Counted from the stretch's first letter, positions 15,801-51,658 are shown. The stretch: DNA of 64,000 nucleotides from Tubulanus polymorphus (GCF_964204645.1 NC_134035.1:12060451-12124450), one strand, 5' to 3'. Notes: generated by a model not told the origin, from the letters alone. A program made the numbers and translations.

Positions 15801-16823
15801 TATATCAGAATGATTTTATTTGAGGAGCGACGTTTCGGCTAACACCTGTTAGCCATCATCAGGCGTACTGATGAGTACAGTACGCCTGATGATGGCTAAC
15901 AGTTGTTAGCCGAAACGTCGCTCCTCAAATATAATCATTCTGATATAGAATTTTTCAATCTTGGCTTCGTTATTGTGGGATTTCTCTCGTCATAAGTCGT
16001 AGTTGCTTGTTATTTTCAATGGTCTTAACAGGTCGATTGACGCTCAGGTGGCCTCTGACCTGGAAAACCGGGAAAACTCGGGGAATTGGAAATCTAGAAA
16101 AAAATCTGGGAAAACTCGGGGAATTTGAAACATTTCACAAGAAACCCTGGAAAACTTAAAGAATGTGGATAATATTATTGACTATGAGTTTTAATTAATA
16201 CGCGATTCAATAAATAAATGAATTGTAGCCTAGAGATTCGTCTGACTCAATTCCGGGGAATTTTATCTAATAAAATGGAAAGATCACTGAAAGCGCCGGG
16301 GATTTTTAGATAGGTGGAAAGTGACCACCCGGCCAGGACTGTTAAACCTAGTCCAGTGTTGGCGCATTAATCATGTATGTTGTTTAATGTTTCAGCCGCC
16401 TAAAGACATGGTACCGTTAATGGACGTGCTGTACGAATATAAAGGAATATTGACCGGTTTCCCGGAAATCATTCAAACTCACAAGAGCGCGACGACTAAA
16501 GTTCGCGAGTGCCAGAAATCGCAAGAAGAGGGAAAAATGACGGAATCGGAAGTTCAAGCGATTGTTTCGAAGTGTGATACGATTTCGTACGCCGTGCTGT
16601 CCGAGGCCGGCTATTTCCAACAGGAACGTGTTCAAGATTTTAAAGTTGCCATGCAACTCTACCTCCAAGAGCAAATACAATTCTATAAAAAGGTAAAGAA
16701 CGCTTGAAATAAACAGAGGGTAAAGGTGTGTGGTTTTACTGTGGTTTTAATCTATTTTTCACTTGACTATTTCAGATAACTGCCAAACTAGAAGATGCTC
16801 TACACAAGTATGACAGCGTATAG
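6874..16823 (+). CDS. SH3PX1: Sorting nexin of the SNX9/SNX18/SNX33 family (SH3 - low complexity - PX - BAR), ~537 aa, 14 coding exons
   Basis: Exons 6874-6888, 7450-7536, 7703-7777, 7933-8115, 8970-9052, 11612-11702, 11965-12090, 12486-12731, 13926-14029, 14273-14376, 15200-15277, 15552-15628, 16396-16692 and 16776-16823 are all GT-AG and phase-consistent. SH3: [14 protein letters not shown]...GDGWWEA...GLVPEAY. Acidic [10 protein letters not shown] motif. [18 protein letters not shown]: [52 protein letters not shown]: [29 protein letters not shown]. Confidence 0.95.
9704..9894. mobile_element. Tc1/mariner-type MITE
   Basis: TIRs CAGTAGATTCCTCGTAACTT and AAGTTACGAGGAGTCTACTG, flanked by TA on both sides. 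Confidence 0.8.
9957..10007 (+). CDS. Candidate 51-nt frame-preserving cassette exon of the sorting nexin
   Basis: tttcag|C GTT GCC GTA GCA CCG GTG CCT AGT ACT GGT GCT CTT TCA TCG TCA TGG TG|gtatgt. Phase 2-2 matches the flanking exons and there is no stop codon. Confidence 0.4.
10798..11084. mobile_element. piggyBac-type MITE
   Basis: TTAA-CCCTTTCAGTGC ... GCACTGAAAGGG-TTAA. An opposite-orientation copy is at 17133-17428 and a partial copy at 13681-~13850. Confidence 0.85.
11314..11400 (+). ncRNA. Minimal type I hammerhead ribozyme motif, Penelope-like end remnant
   Basis: TTTCT-CTGATGA-T-GAGGTT(tacaagt)AACCCC-GAAAC-T-GTT-AGAAA: stem I, catalytic core, stem II and GAAA. GTGGGTTT follows ~25 nt downstream. 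Confidence 0.65.
12752..13050. repeat. Intronic minisatellite, 31-bp period with shorter ~22-bp variants
   Basis: Units agtcctagtaaaccctgtaaagttcctactt, with gtcc at 12791, 12822, 12853, 12884, 12915 and 12946. Confidence 0.9.
13681..13850. mobile_element. Partial piggyBac-type MITE (same family as 10798-11084)
   Basis: Begins TTAACCCTTTCAGTGCTGA and aligns by eye with 17133 onward; the second TIR is missing. Confidence 0.7.
15275..15487. repeat. Intronic minisatellite, 29 bp x 7
   Basis: cgtatccctgcgttgtgaacagtctgtca at 15281, 15310, 15339, 15368, 15397, 15426 and 15455, near-identical. Confidence 0.95.
15722..15990. mobile_element. Fold-back non-autonomous Penelope-like element with a hammerhead motif in each arm
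   Basis: Arms 15755-15870 and 15878-15993 are near-perfectly inverted. A 33-nt unpaired tail occupies 15722-15754. TSD CATAAGTCGTAGTT at 15708-15721 and 15991-16004. Core CTGATGA-T-GGCTAAC(agtt)GTTAGCC-GAAAC-GTC at 15886-15919. Confidence 0.85.
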
Positions 16824-20160: not shown

Positions 20161-20754
20161 ATGATTGACGGACCTCCGCCCTACGAAGAACACAATAAAC
20201 CTATCGTACACAGTTATCGTGGACCCCCTCCGCCATATGAGCAGAATATACCCCGTTTTCACTACAGCATTCGCGCATCTCAAACATCTCGACCATCCAG
20301 ACATGTCATTCTTCAACAACCCACGCCTTCTGACGGCGCTACAGCGCCCCCTGGACTACGAGTCAACCGCTTACGGGGTGCTGGGGCCTCGCTATGCCTC
20401 ATGGGAGCATTTCTATTCATCGTCGGAATTTTTTGGCTCACACAATTCTGGAATATAGGCTACGGACTTTGGGGCGGTGCTCTGTACTTGACGTCCGGTA
20501 TAATCGGGATCGTTACTTCTTCAAAACCAACGAAAGCTTTACTAATTAGCTCGATATTTTTCGGTTCATTATCGGCCGCCGTTTCGACTGTTATCGTCGC
20601 ATATTACGCCATCAAAATGACGATAAACGTATATTTTTTACTCAGTGTTATAACCGGTGTCCTGATTTCTGTGATGTCTGTAATATTGGCTACGACTCCC
20701 GCGAAATGCTGTTACTCGAGAAGTACTGTCTCAGCTCCGATTCAACATTGCTGA
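20161..20754 (+). CDS. Intronless MS4A/CD20-like four-pass membrane protein with two N-terminal PPPY motifs (197 aa)
   Basis: Uninterrupted ORF with four hydrophobic segments. IGYGLWGGALYLTSGIIGIVTS resembles the MS4A G..(F/L)WGG....SG signature, and the C-terminus has a CC motif. GPPPYE appears twice; AATAAA at ~20980. Confidence 0.75.
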   Translation: MIDGPPPYEEHNKPIVHSYRGPPPPYEQNIPRFHYSIRASQTSRPSRHVILQQPTPSDGATAPPGLRVNRLRGAGASLCLMGAFLFIVGIFWLTQFWNIGYGLWGGALYLTSGIIGIVTSSKPTKALLISSIFFGSLSAAVSTVIVAYYAIKMTINVYFLLSVITGVLISVMSVILATTPAKCCYSRSTVSAPIQHC

Positions 20755-44477: not shown

Positions 44478-44572
44478 AAACAACAGCTGTTTTTTTATTC
44501 CTCCTTATAAATTCTGAAGATGGGTGGAAATATTCCACCGAAACGTAAGGAATAAAACAAAGCCGTTGTTTT
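44478..44572 (+). ncRNA. Hammerhead ribozyme core in a short fold-back remnant
   Basis: CTGAAGA-TG-GGTGGAA(ata)TTCCACC-GAAAC-GTA at 44514-44547. 44478-44502 is an inverted copy of 44548-44571. Confidence 0.6.
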
Positions 44573-49848: not shown

Positions 49849-50841
49849 CAGGAGTAGCTGTTTAGGGATTGAGAGCTGACCTGGTTGGAAAACCGTTTTA
49901 TTCCCAATCTGTGACAGAACATTCGAAATGGATTACCATGTTTGCTATTTTGTGCATATAAACCGCTGAAATCCTGATTGATTTTTTGACAGTTATCGGA
50001 GAAACAAAGGAAACAGAGGCTTAATACAAAGAATATTCATTCGAAAATAGCTTTTAGCAATAGCTTTGCGCGAATCGTTTGTCTTTCAATAAACATCTGG
50101 AGCCAGTTCCACAGTTATGAGTTCAATCGAGTCGTGTTGATGATCGCATAACTATTAAACCGAAAACCCAGACAAATTACTAGTGTGTTTTGAAAATAAA
50201 ACGGCTCAGTCACTTATCTAGCTTAATATCTGAATCTTGTCTGAACACAACGCACCAATAGAGCGCACAGGATCCCTCGATAACAATATTTCACTCGTTT
50301 CAATTTCGAGTTGTGTTTTCATCAGATAGTCTCATCAAGTGCGTTTGGGACACAAATACAAAAATTTAAATATTCGCTTTCTTGCCAATGTTCCGGCCCG
50401 GGTAATTTTTTCCAATTTGATTCTCAAAGGGGAGTGGTGTGCATATTCAAGTTTCTCATTTATAGCGCGAGGACATTTGACATCGTTAACCGAACTGTTT
50501 TCAATATCAGGCGTCGGTGTTGAGACTTCGTTAGATCAGTCGGATTTTTCCACGGTTTCTTGAAGTACTTTGGCCGAGACGCGCACGATAGAATCCAAAC
50601 TGAATTTCATCAGGCGATATTTTAAACCCGTTGGTAATTCAATTCATAGGGAAAATCCATCGCCGAGGAATCGCACGCGATTGTTGATAACTTCCGAATT
50701 CGCTGCACGATCATGGCGAACGAAAACGCAAGAAATATATATGTATTCGTTTTAATCGGGAAAGACGTCAAATTGCATACGAAATGGGTAGAGAGAATCC
50801 GACAATAATAACGGAAAAACAAAGTCCGAAAATGTAACTGA

Positions 50842-51312
50842 AGCTAGTGCAGAAAATTCAACGTTTCGACTACATCCTGATAGTCATCTTCAGGAATACT
50901 GTATTCCTTGAGCTAGTGCAGTTTATTCAACGTTTCGACTACATCCTAATAGTCATCTTCAGGAATACTGTATTCCTTGAGCTAGTGTAGTTTATTCGAC
51001 GTTTCGACTTTATCCTAATAGTCATCTTCAGGAATACTGTATTCCTTGAGCTAGTGTGGTTTATTCAACGTTTCGACTATATCCTAATAGTCATCTTCAG
51101 GAATACTGTATTCCTTGAGCTAGTGTAGTTTATTCGACGTTTCGACTTTATCCTAATAGTCATCTTCAGGAATACTGTATTCCTTGAGCAAGTGCAGTTT
51201 ATTCAACGTTTCGACTACATCCTGATAATAATCTTCAGGAATACTGTATTCCTTGAGCTAGTGTAGTTTATTCAACGTTTCGACTATATCATAATAGTCA
51301 TCTTCAGGAATA
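50842..51312 (-). ncRNA. Seven tandem 69-bp units, each a minimal type I hammerhead ribozyme motif
   Basis: acgtttcgac recurs at 50861, 50930, 50999, 51068, 51137, 51206 and 51275. The minus-strand unit reads TATTC-CTGAAGA-T-GACTA(ttaggatr)TAGTC-GAAAC-GT(T/C)-GAATA. Confidence 0.8.
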
Positions 51313-51324
51313 ATGAAGATGACA

Positions 51325-51370
51325 TTATTCCTGAAGATGACTATTAGGATATAGTCGAAACGTTGAATAA
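51325..51370 (+). ncRNA. Eighth, inverted hammerhead motif copy
   Basis: TTATTC-CTGAAGA-T-GACTA(ttaggata)TAGTC-GAAAC-GTT-GAATAA. Confidence 0.8.
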
Positions 51371-51510
51371 ACTACTCCAGCTTCACTTACATTTTTGGAC
51401 TTCGTTTTTCCGATATTATCGTGGGATTCTCTCTACTTAGCTTCAACACGATTATAGTGTTTTATCAATCGTGTGCATACAAAATGATACATAAAAACAG
51501 CTTTTCTTTC

Positions 51511-51658
51511 AGACGAAAATATACGCAATATCCGTGTAAGATGATAACGAGAGAAATCCCACAATAAATTCAGCCAAAACGAGAAACTTGAATAGAAGAG
51601 TTATATATATTTGCGCCACGTTTCGGCTAAAGACTATTAGCCATCATCAGGCGTACCG
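51511..51658 (-). mobile_element. Diverged single-arm copy of the 15.7-kb hammerhead element family
   Basis: agacgaaaatatacgcaatatccgtgta..acgagagaaatcccacaataa..cgtttcggctaaagactattagccatcatcaggcgtac aligns with 15722-15868. Confidence 0.75.

Follow-up and report, generated by a model that had tools for sequence, protein, structure and literature searches.

Tandem 69-nt minimal hammerhead motifs in a putative insertion derived from a Penelope-like element of Tubulanus polymorphus

Penelope-like elements (PLEs) carry minimal type I hammerhead motifs (min-HHRs), which have been defined by a long helix II, a short helix I, a bulged base, a G10.1-C11.1 pair and a palindromic 15.2-16.2 position (PMC4209133). 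The published motifs of this kind cleave weakly even as dimers (PMC4209133), and in one case cleavage is protein-assisted (PMC11167929). Insertions of PLEs are typically strongly truncated at the 5' end, with an inverted 5'-truncated copy next to them and a tail of 30-40 bp at one end (PMC8557442). In vitro, a PLE protein cuts and extends both DNA strands, and the reverse transcriptase (RT) has two internal start sites, which are situated around an AC-rich stem-loop and delimit the tail (PMC11167929). The non-LTR retrozymes have been described as non-autonomous derivatives of the pseudo-LTR (pLTR) of PLEs, with consensus units of 51-972 bp and multimers enriched at chromosome ends (10.64898/2026.07.22.740005), and the animal retrozyme RNAs that have been demonstrated experimentally are 170-400 nt in size and form circles (PMC7229834).

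The window analyzed here, a stretch of 64,000 nt of the Tubulanus polymorphus genome (C11:12060451-12124450; 268 Mb in 77 contigs), is located 1.85 Mb from the end of its 13.98-Mb contig and contains a short array of 69-nt units with hammerhead motifs. In our assessment, the locus is very probably an old insertion that was produced by the PLE machinery from a non-autonomous RNA of the pLTR 3' end. The comparison of this locus with its relatives in the same genome and with the described systems is presented below, together with the competing explanations of the array.

Anatomy of the locus and its hammerhead motif

An initial annotation, made from the sequence of the window, described the locus as seven minus-strand 69-nt hammerhead units and one inverted copy, enclosed between fold-back arms with a tail and a 13-bp target duplication with one mismatch. 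This description is borne out in all these respects by the following features.

50774..50786, no strand: left copy of the target-site duplication, identical to the right copy at 12 of 13 bases (read directly)
50788..50860, minus strand: tail-less 3' module of the minus-strand arm, terminating ...GGATTCTCTCTAC; inverted-repeat arm I1, homologous to the PLE pLTR downstream of the hammerhead
50842..51312, minus strand: array of the 69-nt unit, 6.8 copies (Tandem Repeats Finder and core pattern)
50861-50893, 50930-50962, 50999-51031, 51068-51100, 51137-51169, 51206-51238 (helix II broken) and 51275-51307, minus strand: min-HHR cores
51316..51322, no strand: head-to-head junction, a 7-nt spacer between oppositely oriented copies (inverted pair I3)
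51331..51363, plus strand: the sole plus-strand min-HHR core, a perfect match to the family core (core pattern)
51364..51436, plus strand: 3' module of the plus-strand arm (inverted-repeat arm I1)
51437..51473, plus strand: 37-nt PLE tail extension with a small AC-rich stem-loop (AACAC...GUGUU), at the right end only
51474..51486, no strand: right copy of the target-site duplication (read directly)

Tandem Repeats Finder detects a single array at 50842-51312, with a period of 69, 6.8 copies, 92% matches and no indels. The pattern of CUGAAGA, helix II and GAAACGU has seven minus-strand matches and one plus-strand match (51331-51363), the chance expectation being 0. The inverted arms span 115 nt each (50788-50902 and 51322-51436) and show 87% complementarity, and the innermost arms (51256-51315 and 51323-51382, pair I3) are 60 nt long and 95% complementary, with the 7-nt spacer between them. 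The tail-less arm terminates with ...CUCUCUAC, and the tailed arm extends 37 nt beyond this point, past the AACAC/GUGUU stem-loop. An inverted 5'-truncated copy, a one-sided 37-nt tail and a target duplication are all encountered at the locus; the ORF is absent from this PLE copy of the window. The choice of the seven units as the sense copy and of the single unit as the inverted one is arbitrary, and by the logic of PLE insertion the locus is better read as seven units on the tail-less arm and a single copy on the tailed arm.

The arms of the element differ from each other by 13%, the units by 8% and the two copies of the duplication at one of 13 positions, and the locus copy is an old, decayed and probably inert insertion. 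The neighboring ORFs of at least 100 aa within 7 kb have no Pfam match, so that the element appears to lie in non-coding DNA. The sole ORF of at least 180 aa in the window (20161-20754, plus strand) has a weak CD20-like (MS4A) Pfam match, with a score of 23.9 bits against a curated cut-off of 27.9.

A repeat-rich structure of this type could also be produced during assembly, by a mis-join of dispersed repeat copies that would create the array or the fold-back. Comparison of the locus with three public runs (short-read contigs from one study) gives some ground for this suspicion, in that no contig extends across the array and the depth of the repeat k-mers in these runs is thousands of times that of the flanks. 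The flanks, however, are single-copy and bear the matching 13-bp duplication, and the same architecture is found at many loci, so that an artefact appears extremely unlikely.

Nor does the central near-perfect 60-nt palindrome seem to be functional in its own right. If it were transcribed into a hairpin RNA, miRNA-like or a source of siRNAs, the 95% complementarity of its arms and the 7-nt spacer would be suitable, and permissive Rfam searches yield matches to plant MIR hairpin families with E down to 1e-13. Yet these matches are below the gathering scores (66 vs 94 bits and 64 vs 249) and appear on both strands, as befits a generic long hairpin, and PLE integration accounts for the palindrome itself, which is found again in many copies with varied spacers; we consider this function highly improbable. 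Identification with a plant MIR was rejected, as the matches are sub-gathering, arise from the central palindrome and concern plant families. The suggestion of the initial annotation that the inverted copy serves as a silencing device is likewise superfluous, since inverted copies are a routine by-product of PLE integration that is seen in many members of the family.

Each minus-strand unit contains helices I (UAUUC/GAAUA) and II (GACUAU/AUAGUC, preceded by a bulged U and with a 6-nt loop), the CUGAAGA and GAAA boxes, and the palindrome ACGU, which occupies the position of helix III. The order of stem I, CUGAAGA, stem II and GAAAC had been recognized from the outset, together with the cleavage triplets, in which N17 is C (that is, GUC) in two units and U (GUU) in the remainder. 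The catalytic boxes CUGANGA and GAAA, with C3 and G8, are present in type I order in all eight cores of the locus. In the unit at 51206-51238, helix II is lost, and two other minus-strand units have an A.A mismatch in this helix.

A scan with hammerhead models, which had been proposed as a check on the initial annotation, returned nothing: the Rfam models of hammerhead types I, II and III, HH9 and HH10 gave no match at the gathering score or at E up to 10, an expected failure given that these models include helix III, which the motif does not have. A generic descriptor (CUGANGA, then 8-30 nt, then GAAACGU) was used instead, and it yields 12 matches in the window against 0.08 expected and 4,468 sites genome-wide against 89 in the reversed control. 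The families differ in their helices while retaining complementarity throughout, with helix II represented by GACUAU/AUAGUC, GGCUGUU/AACAGCC, GAUCUC/GAGAUC and GGCUAAC/GUUAGCC, and helix I by UAUUC/GAAUA, CCAC/GUGG, ACAC/GUGU and CGC/GCG.

Covariation was assessed on an ungapped alignment of 12 representatives from five families, in which no column varies in the catalytic boxes, at the bulged U, in the G10.1-C11.1 pair or in ACGU. In this alignment, 80.4% of the cells assigned to helices are paired, compared to 26-51% when the partners are slid, and for helix II the value is 90.9%; both sides are changed in 10 of the 13 pairs, and none of 500 shuffles reaches the observed covariation score. 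Helices I and II covary between families, in line with the stem covariation among homologues on which the initial annotation had made the hammerhead reading depend. On the strength of its sequence, the motif is a Penelope-type minimal type I hammerhead without helix III and with an ACGU palindrome; this was the original assignment, and the motif matches the published criteria (PMC4209133).

Relatives in the genome and the proposed course of insertion

A search of the genome for the GIY-YIG domain revealed many open frames of 817-841 aa. The autonomous PLEs with a hammerhead core identical to that of the locus are ~2.86 kb in size and encode RT and GIY-YIG in open frames of 828-841 aa, with matches to RVT_1 and GIY-YIG and with the endonuclease at the C-terminus. 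The identity with the plus-strand core of the locus was established in five fetched autonomous copies (L045, L047, L049, L051 and L052). In three of these (L045, L047 and L049), the core is found on both sides of the ORF with a spacing of ~2856 bp, which places the hammerhead within the pLTR. In the autonomous PLEs, the hammerhead is located ~110 nt upstream of the ATG of the ORF, and the end of the element is immediately before this ATG. The arms of the locus are 86-91% identical to the pLTR end of the autonomous copies (86-87% for the minus-strand arm and 86-91% for the tailed arm). The genome search that the initial annotation had called for, namely one for a PLE with RT and GIY-YIG that ends in this sequence, was thus successful, recovering the exact hammerhead along with a homologous 3' end, and, judging by this homology, the locus is an insertion derived from a PLE that encodes both enzymes. 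Between the short family and the present-day autonomous PLE, the 3' module has diverged by 9-14% plus indels, so that the current autonomous partner may not be the original mobilizer.

A third type of autonomous PLE was observed in L046 (C4:49001-59000), with an 820-aa open frame, a spacing of ~5.5 kb, a shorter hammerhead-like motif, in which helix II (GAU/AUC) has just 3 bp, and another open frame, of 656 aa, between the copies. Many short copies start 0-3 nt from the 5' strand of helix I, and the full-length pLTR contains a pyrimidine-rich run that ends in AG 12 nt upstream of the same strand (both at L047:2150-2190 and equivalents). In Drosophila virilis, the end of an intron coincides with helix I's 5' end. 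By analogy, the start of the short copies near helix I may correspond to an RNA 5' end or a splice site.

With the 119-nt arm as query, at least 1003 first-look candidates were obtained genome-wide. The fetched loci of the family are of three forms: solo modules, which comprise the hammerhead, a 60-nt region and the 37-nt tail; head-to-head inverted pairs; and copies in which 69-nt units form an array on one arm or on both. The numbers of units per arm in these loci are 0.3+5, 2+1, 2+2, 4+4 and 5+5, compared to 7+1 in the locus of the window. Target duplications of 12-14 bp occur in copies of the family (for example, L004 and L012), and the two-armed copies with a detected tail have it at one end only. 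Some arrays (L043 and L073) have no recognizable PLE module at one end or at both. At three loci, L012 (C8:1.40 Mb), L013 (C11:13.10 Mb) and L017 (C6:21.22 Mb), the two arms carry the same number of units (5+5, 4+4 and 2+2, respectively), and this equality suggests snap-back self-copying of the cDNA, and not two independent primings, as the origin of some fold-backs.

Insertion of PLEs next to pre-existing copies has been reported. Here, a second PLE family is represented by a solo fragment (51497-51656, minus strand; core at 51618-51650; helix II GGCUAAU/UUUAGCC) that is located ~25 nt rightward of the element, with the two tail ends facing each other, and the position of the locus beside this fragment accords with the reported behavior; the autonomous copies of this second family, with 817 aa, are represented by L044, L048 and L050. 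Further min-HHRs of other families are present in the window at 15830-15918 and 44514-44546, of which one is a head-to-head inverted pair (helix II GGCUAAC/GUUAGCC) and the other a solo motif (helix II GGUGGAA/UUCCACC, with a 2-nt bulge). Different PLE families have in common a 3' signal that consists of UUGUGGGAUUYCUCUC and, ~10 nt further on, a small stem-loop of the ACACGGAUAU type (window 51400-51473; L047:2280-2330; window 51497-51560, minus strand), and two alternative element ends flank its stem-loop. This shared signal is probably the region of RT recognition and start.

For the insertion itself, we propose the following course of events. As the template, we assume a non-autonomous RNA that descends from the 3' end of a PLE pseudo-LTR and whose basic module would consist of the minimal type I hammerhead (~47 nt), a 60-nt region ending ...GGGATTCTCTC and the 37-nt stem-loop tail. 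Staggered cuts made by the PLE endonuclease would account for the 13-bp duplication, and initiation by the RT inside the RNA, at either of the two sites that flank the stem-loop, would generate one tailed and one tail-less end. Copies primed in both orientations would then meet head to head, one of them spanning a single hammerhead and the other seven 69-nt units. The seven-unit arm would have been started at the inner site and so be tail-less, with the single plus-strand copy on the tailed arm. Given the seven units on one of the copies, the lineage of the template would already have possessed tandem repeats of a 69-nt PLE deletion derivative. Two-ended priming and a multi-unit RNA template are adopted here by analogy with the published biochemistry, and the same applies to dimeric cleavage, in which hammerheads without helix III would attain an active core only when paired as dimers through the ACGU palindrome. 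Dimeric PLE hammerheads were reportedly also treated by Lunse, Weinberg and Breaker in RNA Biol 14:1499, as cited in PMC6765202.

Origin, spread and possible activity of the 69-nt unit

The 69-nt unit is made up of the hammerhead (~47 nt, from UAUUCC to GUU), the first ~18 nt past the cleavage site and a 12-nt junction that holds a short inverted copy of the beginning of the hammerhead (the helix I strand). In terms of sequence, the unit can be regarded as in effect a deletion derivative of the 2.86-kb PLE unit. Only natural copies were used in this analysis, and the majority string of the non-coding 69-nt unit is identical to a natural unit. The identical 12-nt head-to-tail junction occurs at 915 places in the genome, compared to 0 in the control, and the equivalent junctions in other hammerhead families number 0 and 1. 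Because the same junction recurs at 915 places, the unit arose once and then spread, and was not remade at each insertion. This finding argues against the formation of the array by repeated template jumping at the site, one of the routes considered in the initial annotation.

Among the first 100 matches listed, most of the junction places lie no more than ~1 Mb from a contig end. The 69-nt unit forms long arrays (at least 23 units; for example, L043, C2:31466460-31468010) that cluster within ~1 Mb of the ends of C1, C2, C3, C4 and C5. At the two contig ends that were inspected, none of the seven simple telomere-type repeats searched for was found, and the array closest to an end is 3.4 kb inside. 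Two types of unit, with ATAGUC and AAAGUC in helix II, are common to arrays on different chromosomes, so that the arrays are mosaics. In the array of the window, two variants are common to units 3 and 5, and others to units 2, 6 and 7.

The sharing of variants between units of the same array is what would be expected from local duplication, and the clustering of long arrays near contig ends is satellite-like. Both observations fit an ordinary minisatellite, where insertion of a short PLE fragment of one or two units was followed by expansion to seven through slippage or unequal crossing-over. The same variant types, however, are found on other chromosomes, down to the compound of AAAGUC and GUC, which recurs in L013, and this indicates that the variation among the units predates the insertion at the locus. 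Moreover, independent insertions with target duplications carry from 2 to 7 units, as would fit variable 5' truncation of a multi-unit template. Expansion in place is, all in all, a rather unlikely source of the array, and we favor insertion of a PLE-derived copy from a template that was already multi-unit, although part of the copy number at the locus could come from later unequal exchange.

The array might instead be an active element, in which dimers of neighboring units self-cleave to release 69-nt RNAs that are converted to circles and then copied by the PLE RT in a rolling-circle mode to yield new arrays. Every unit contains a complete min-HHR with a GUH site, the tandem layout is the condition that permits such dimers (PMC4209133), and published animal retrozymes do make circles, although these are 170-400 nt in size (PMC7229834). 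In addition, short arrays are formed by this hammerhead family only, with its 915 junctions, which implies that something specific drives the amplification.

The composition of the arrays does not agree with this scheme. Instead of uniform copies of one circle, they are mosaics in which the ATAGUC and AAAGUC types are common to different chromosomes, and for the same reason rolling-circle reverse transcription of a single 69-nt circle, the other route put forward in the initial annotation, is unlikely. Over 55 units, the core is variable at 2.1% and helix II at 4.8%, compared to 1.2% for the linker, so that the ribozyme is no better conserved than its surroundings, and the commonest variant of a long array (that of 23 units) has the A.A mismatch in helix II. 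Folding predictions point in the same direction: a junction hairpin, GGAAUAC/GUAUUCC, takes up the 5' strand of helix I, and the active-like fold is predicted to be less stable by 8.1 kcal/mol, whereas in the context of the full-length PLE the predicted minimum-energy fold contains helices I and II. This is a local comparison, chosen because the minimum-energy folds of the whole array are dominated by palindromic-junction pairing and because the dimer is a pseudoknot. Furthermore, the RT start region is outside the 69-nt unit, and the min-HHRs of PLEs cleave weakly in vitro even when dimeric.

Taken against the evidence of ribozyme layout and specific amplification, these observations make an active cycle of cleavage, circularization and copying improbable, and the hammerheads in the array of the locus are probably poor or inactive ribozymes. 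It is similarly doubtful that the array represents a working minimal retrozyme, with double hammerheads paired through ACGU, possibly with the help of a PLE protein, with the junction hairpin as an on/off switch and with 69-nt RNAs that circularize. If this were true, no smaller hammerhead circular RNA and no smaller ribozyme-bearing mobile unit would be known, and the unit would be a parasite of an identified, apparently intact PLE of the same genome.

Comparison with known systems

Under the favored reading, that of an old PLE-mediated insertion, the locus adds no new principle, and the genome offers a compact system for the study of how hammerhead tandem repeats are mobilized. Apparently intact autonomous PLEs, thousands of short derivatives with the same ribozyme and a 69-nt unit of single origin are found in it side by side. 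The dispersed arrays that retain the PLE start region, the one-sided tail and target duplications provide direct structural support for mobilization by target-primed reverse transcription of PLEs. The locus also supplies small, easily synthesized constructs for tests of dimeric and protein-assisted cleavage.

With the PLE min-HHRs (Cervera and de la Pena 2014, PMC4209133), the motif of the locus shares the type I layout, the CUGANGA and GAAA boxes, the bulged base before helix II, the G10.1-C11.1 pair, a helix II of 6-7 bp, a helix I of 4-6 bp, the lack of helix III and the palindromic 15.2-16.2 position (ACGU). The thousands of copies per genome, the frequent pairs on opposite strands and the location of the motif in the pLTR of elements with RT and GIY-YIG are shared as well. 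The difference is that here the motif is also packed in 69-nt head-to-tail units, whereas the relevant passages of the publications stress dispersed single motifs or a spacing of ~3 kb. Newt satellite 2 and Sm-alpha of Schistosoma, as outlined in the parts of the literature that deal with them (PMC4209133, PMC7229834), are similar in being tandem or SINE-like repeats with type I hammerheads that work as dimers through a weak helix III; unlike the locus, they are described there as having a true, though short, looped helix III and units of ~330 bp.

The architecture of the insertion closely resembles that of PLEs (Craig et al. 2021, PMC8557442; Frangieh et al. 2024, PMC11167929), with severe 5' truncation, an inverted truncated copy, a tail of 30-40 bp at one end, an AC-rich stem-loop at the RT start and a neighboring PLE fragment in common. 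The locus differs in that its body consists of only the last ~145 nt of the pLTR plus the mini-repeat. Also, the tail ends just before the ATG of the ORF in the family of the locus, compared to start sites 111-118 nt within the ORF in the Anolis element (PMC11167929).

The locus can also be compared with the non-LTR retrozymes of animals (Cervera and de la Pena 2020, PMC7229834; Li, Clavereau and Pollet 2026, 10.64898/2026.07.22.740005), which are likewise non-coding tandem repeats with a type I hammerhead in each unit, range from monomers to long multimers, have multimers near chromosome ends, co-occur with PLEs and show homology to the pLTR. The arrays described here are non-coding head-to-tail repeats, each with a type I hammerhead, as in this class. 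From canonical retrozymes they depart in that helix I is open, helix III and contacts between loops 1 and 2 are lacking, and the unit is 69 nt, not ~170-400. This unit is far smaller than the 170-400 nt RNAs studied experimentally (PMC7229834) and lies within the range of the computed consensus units, 51-972 bp (10.64898/2026.07.22.740005). With units of pLTR origin published over this range, the very small retrozyme-like unit of the initial annotation is not unprecedented. The putative ribozyme of the locus is minimal, without helix III or recognizable loop-loop contacts, and the arrays are capped by a PLE 3' module with a tail and target duplication, in both of which respects they differ from the published retrozymes. 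With these differences, the locus fits the published non-LTR retrozymes as non-autonomous derivatives of PLEs and belongs to an already described kind of element.
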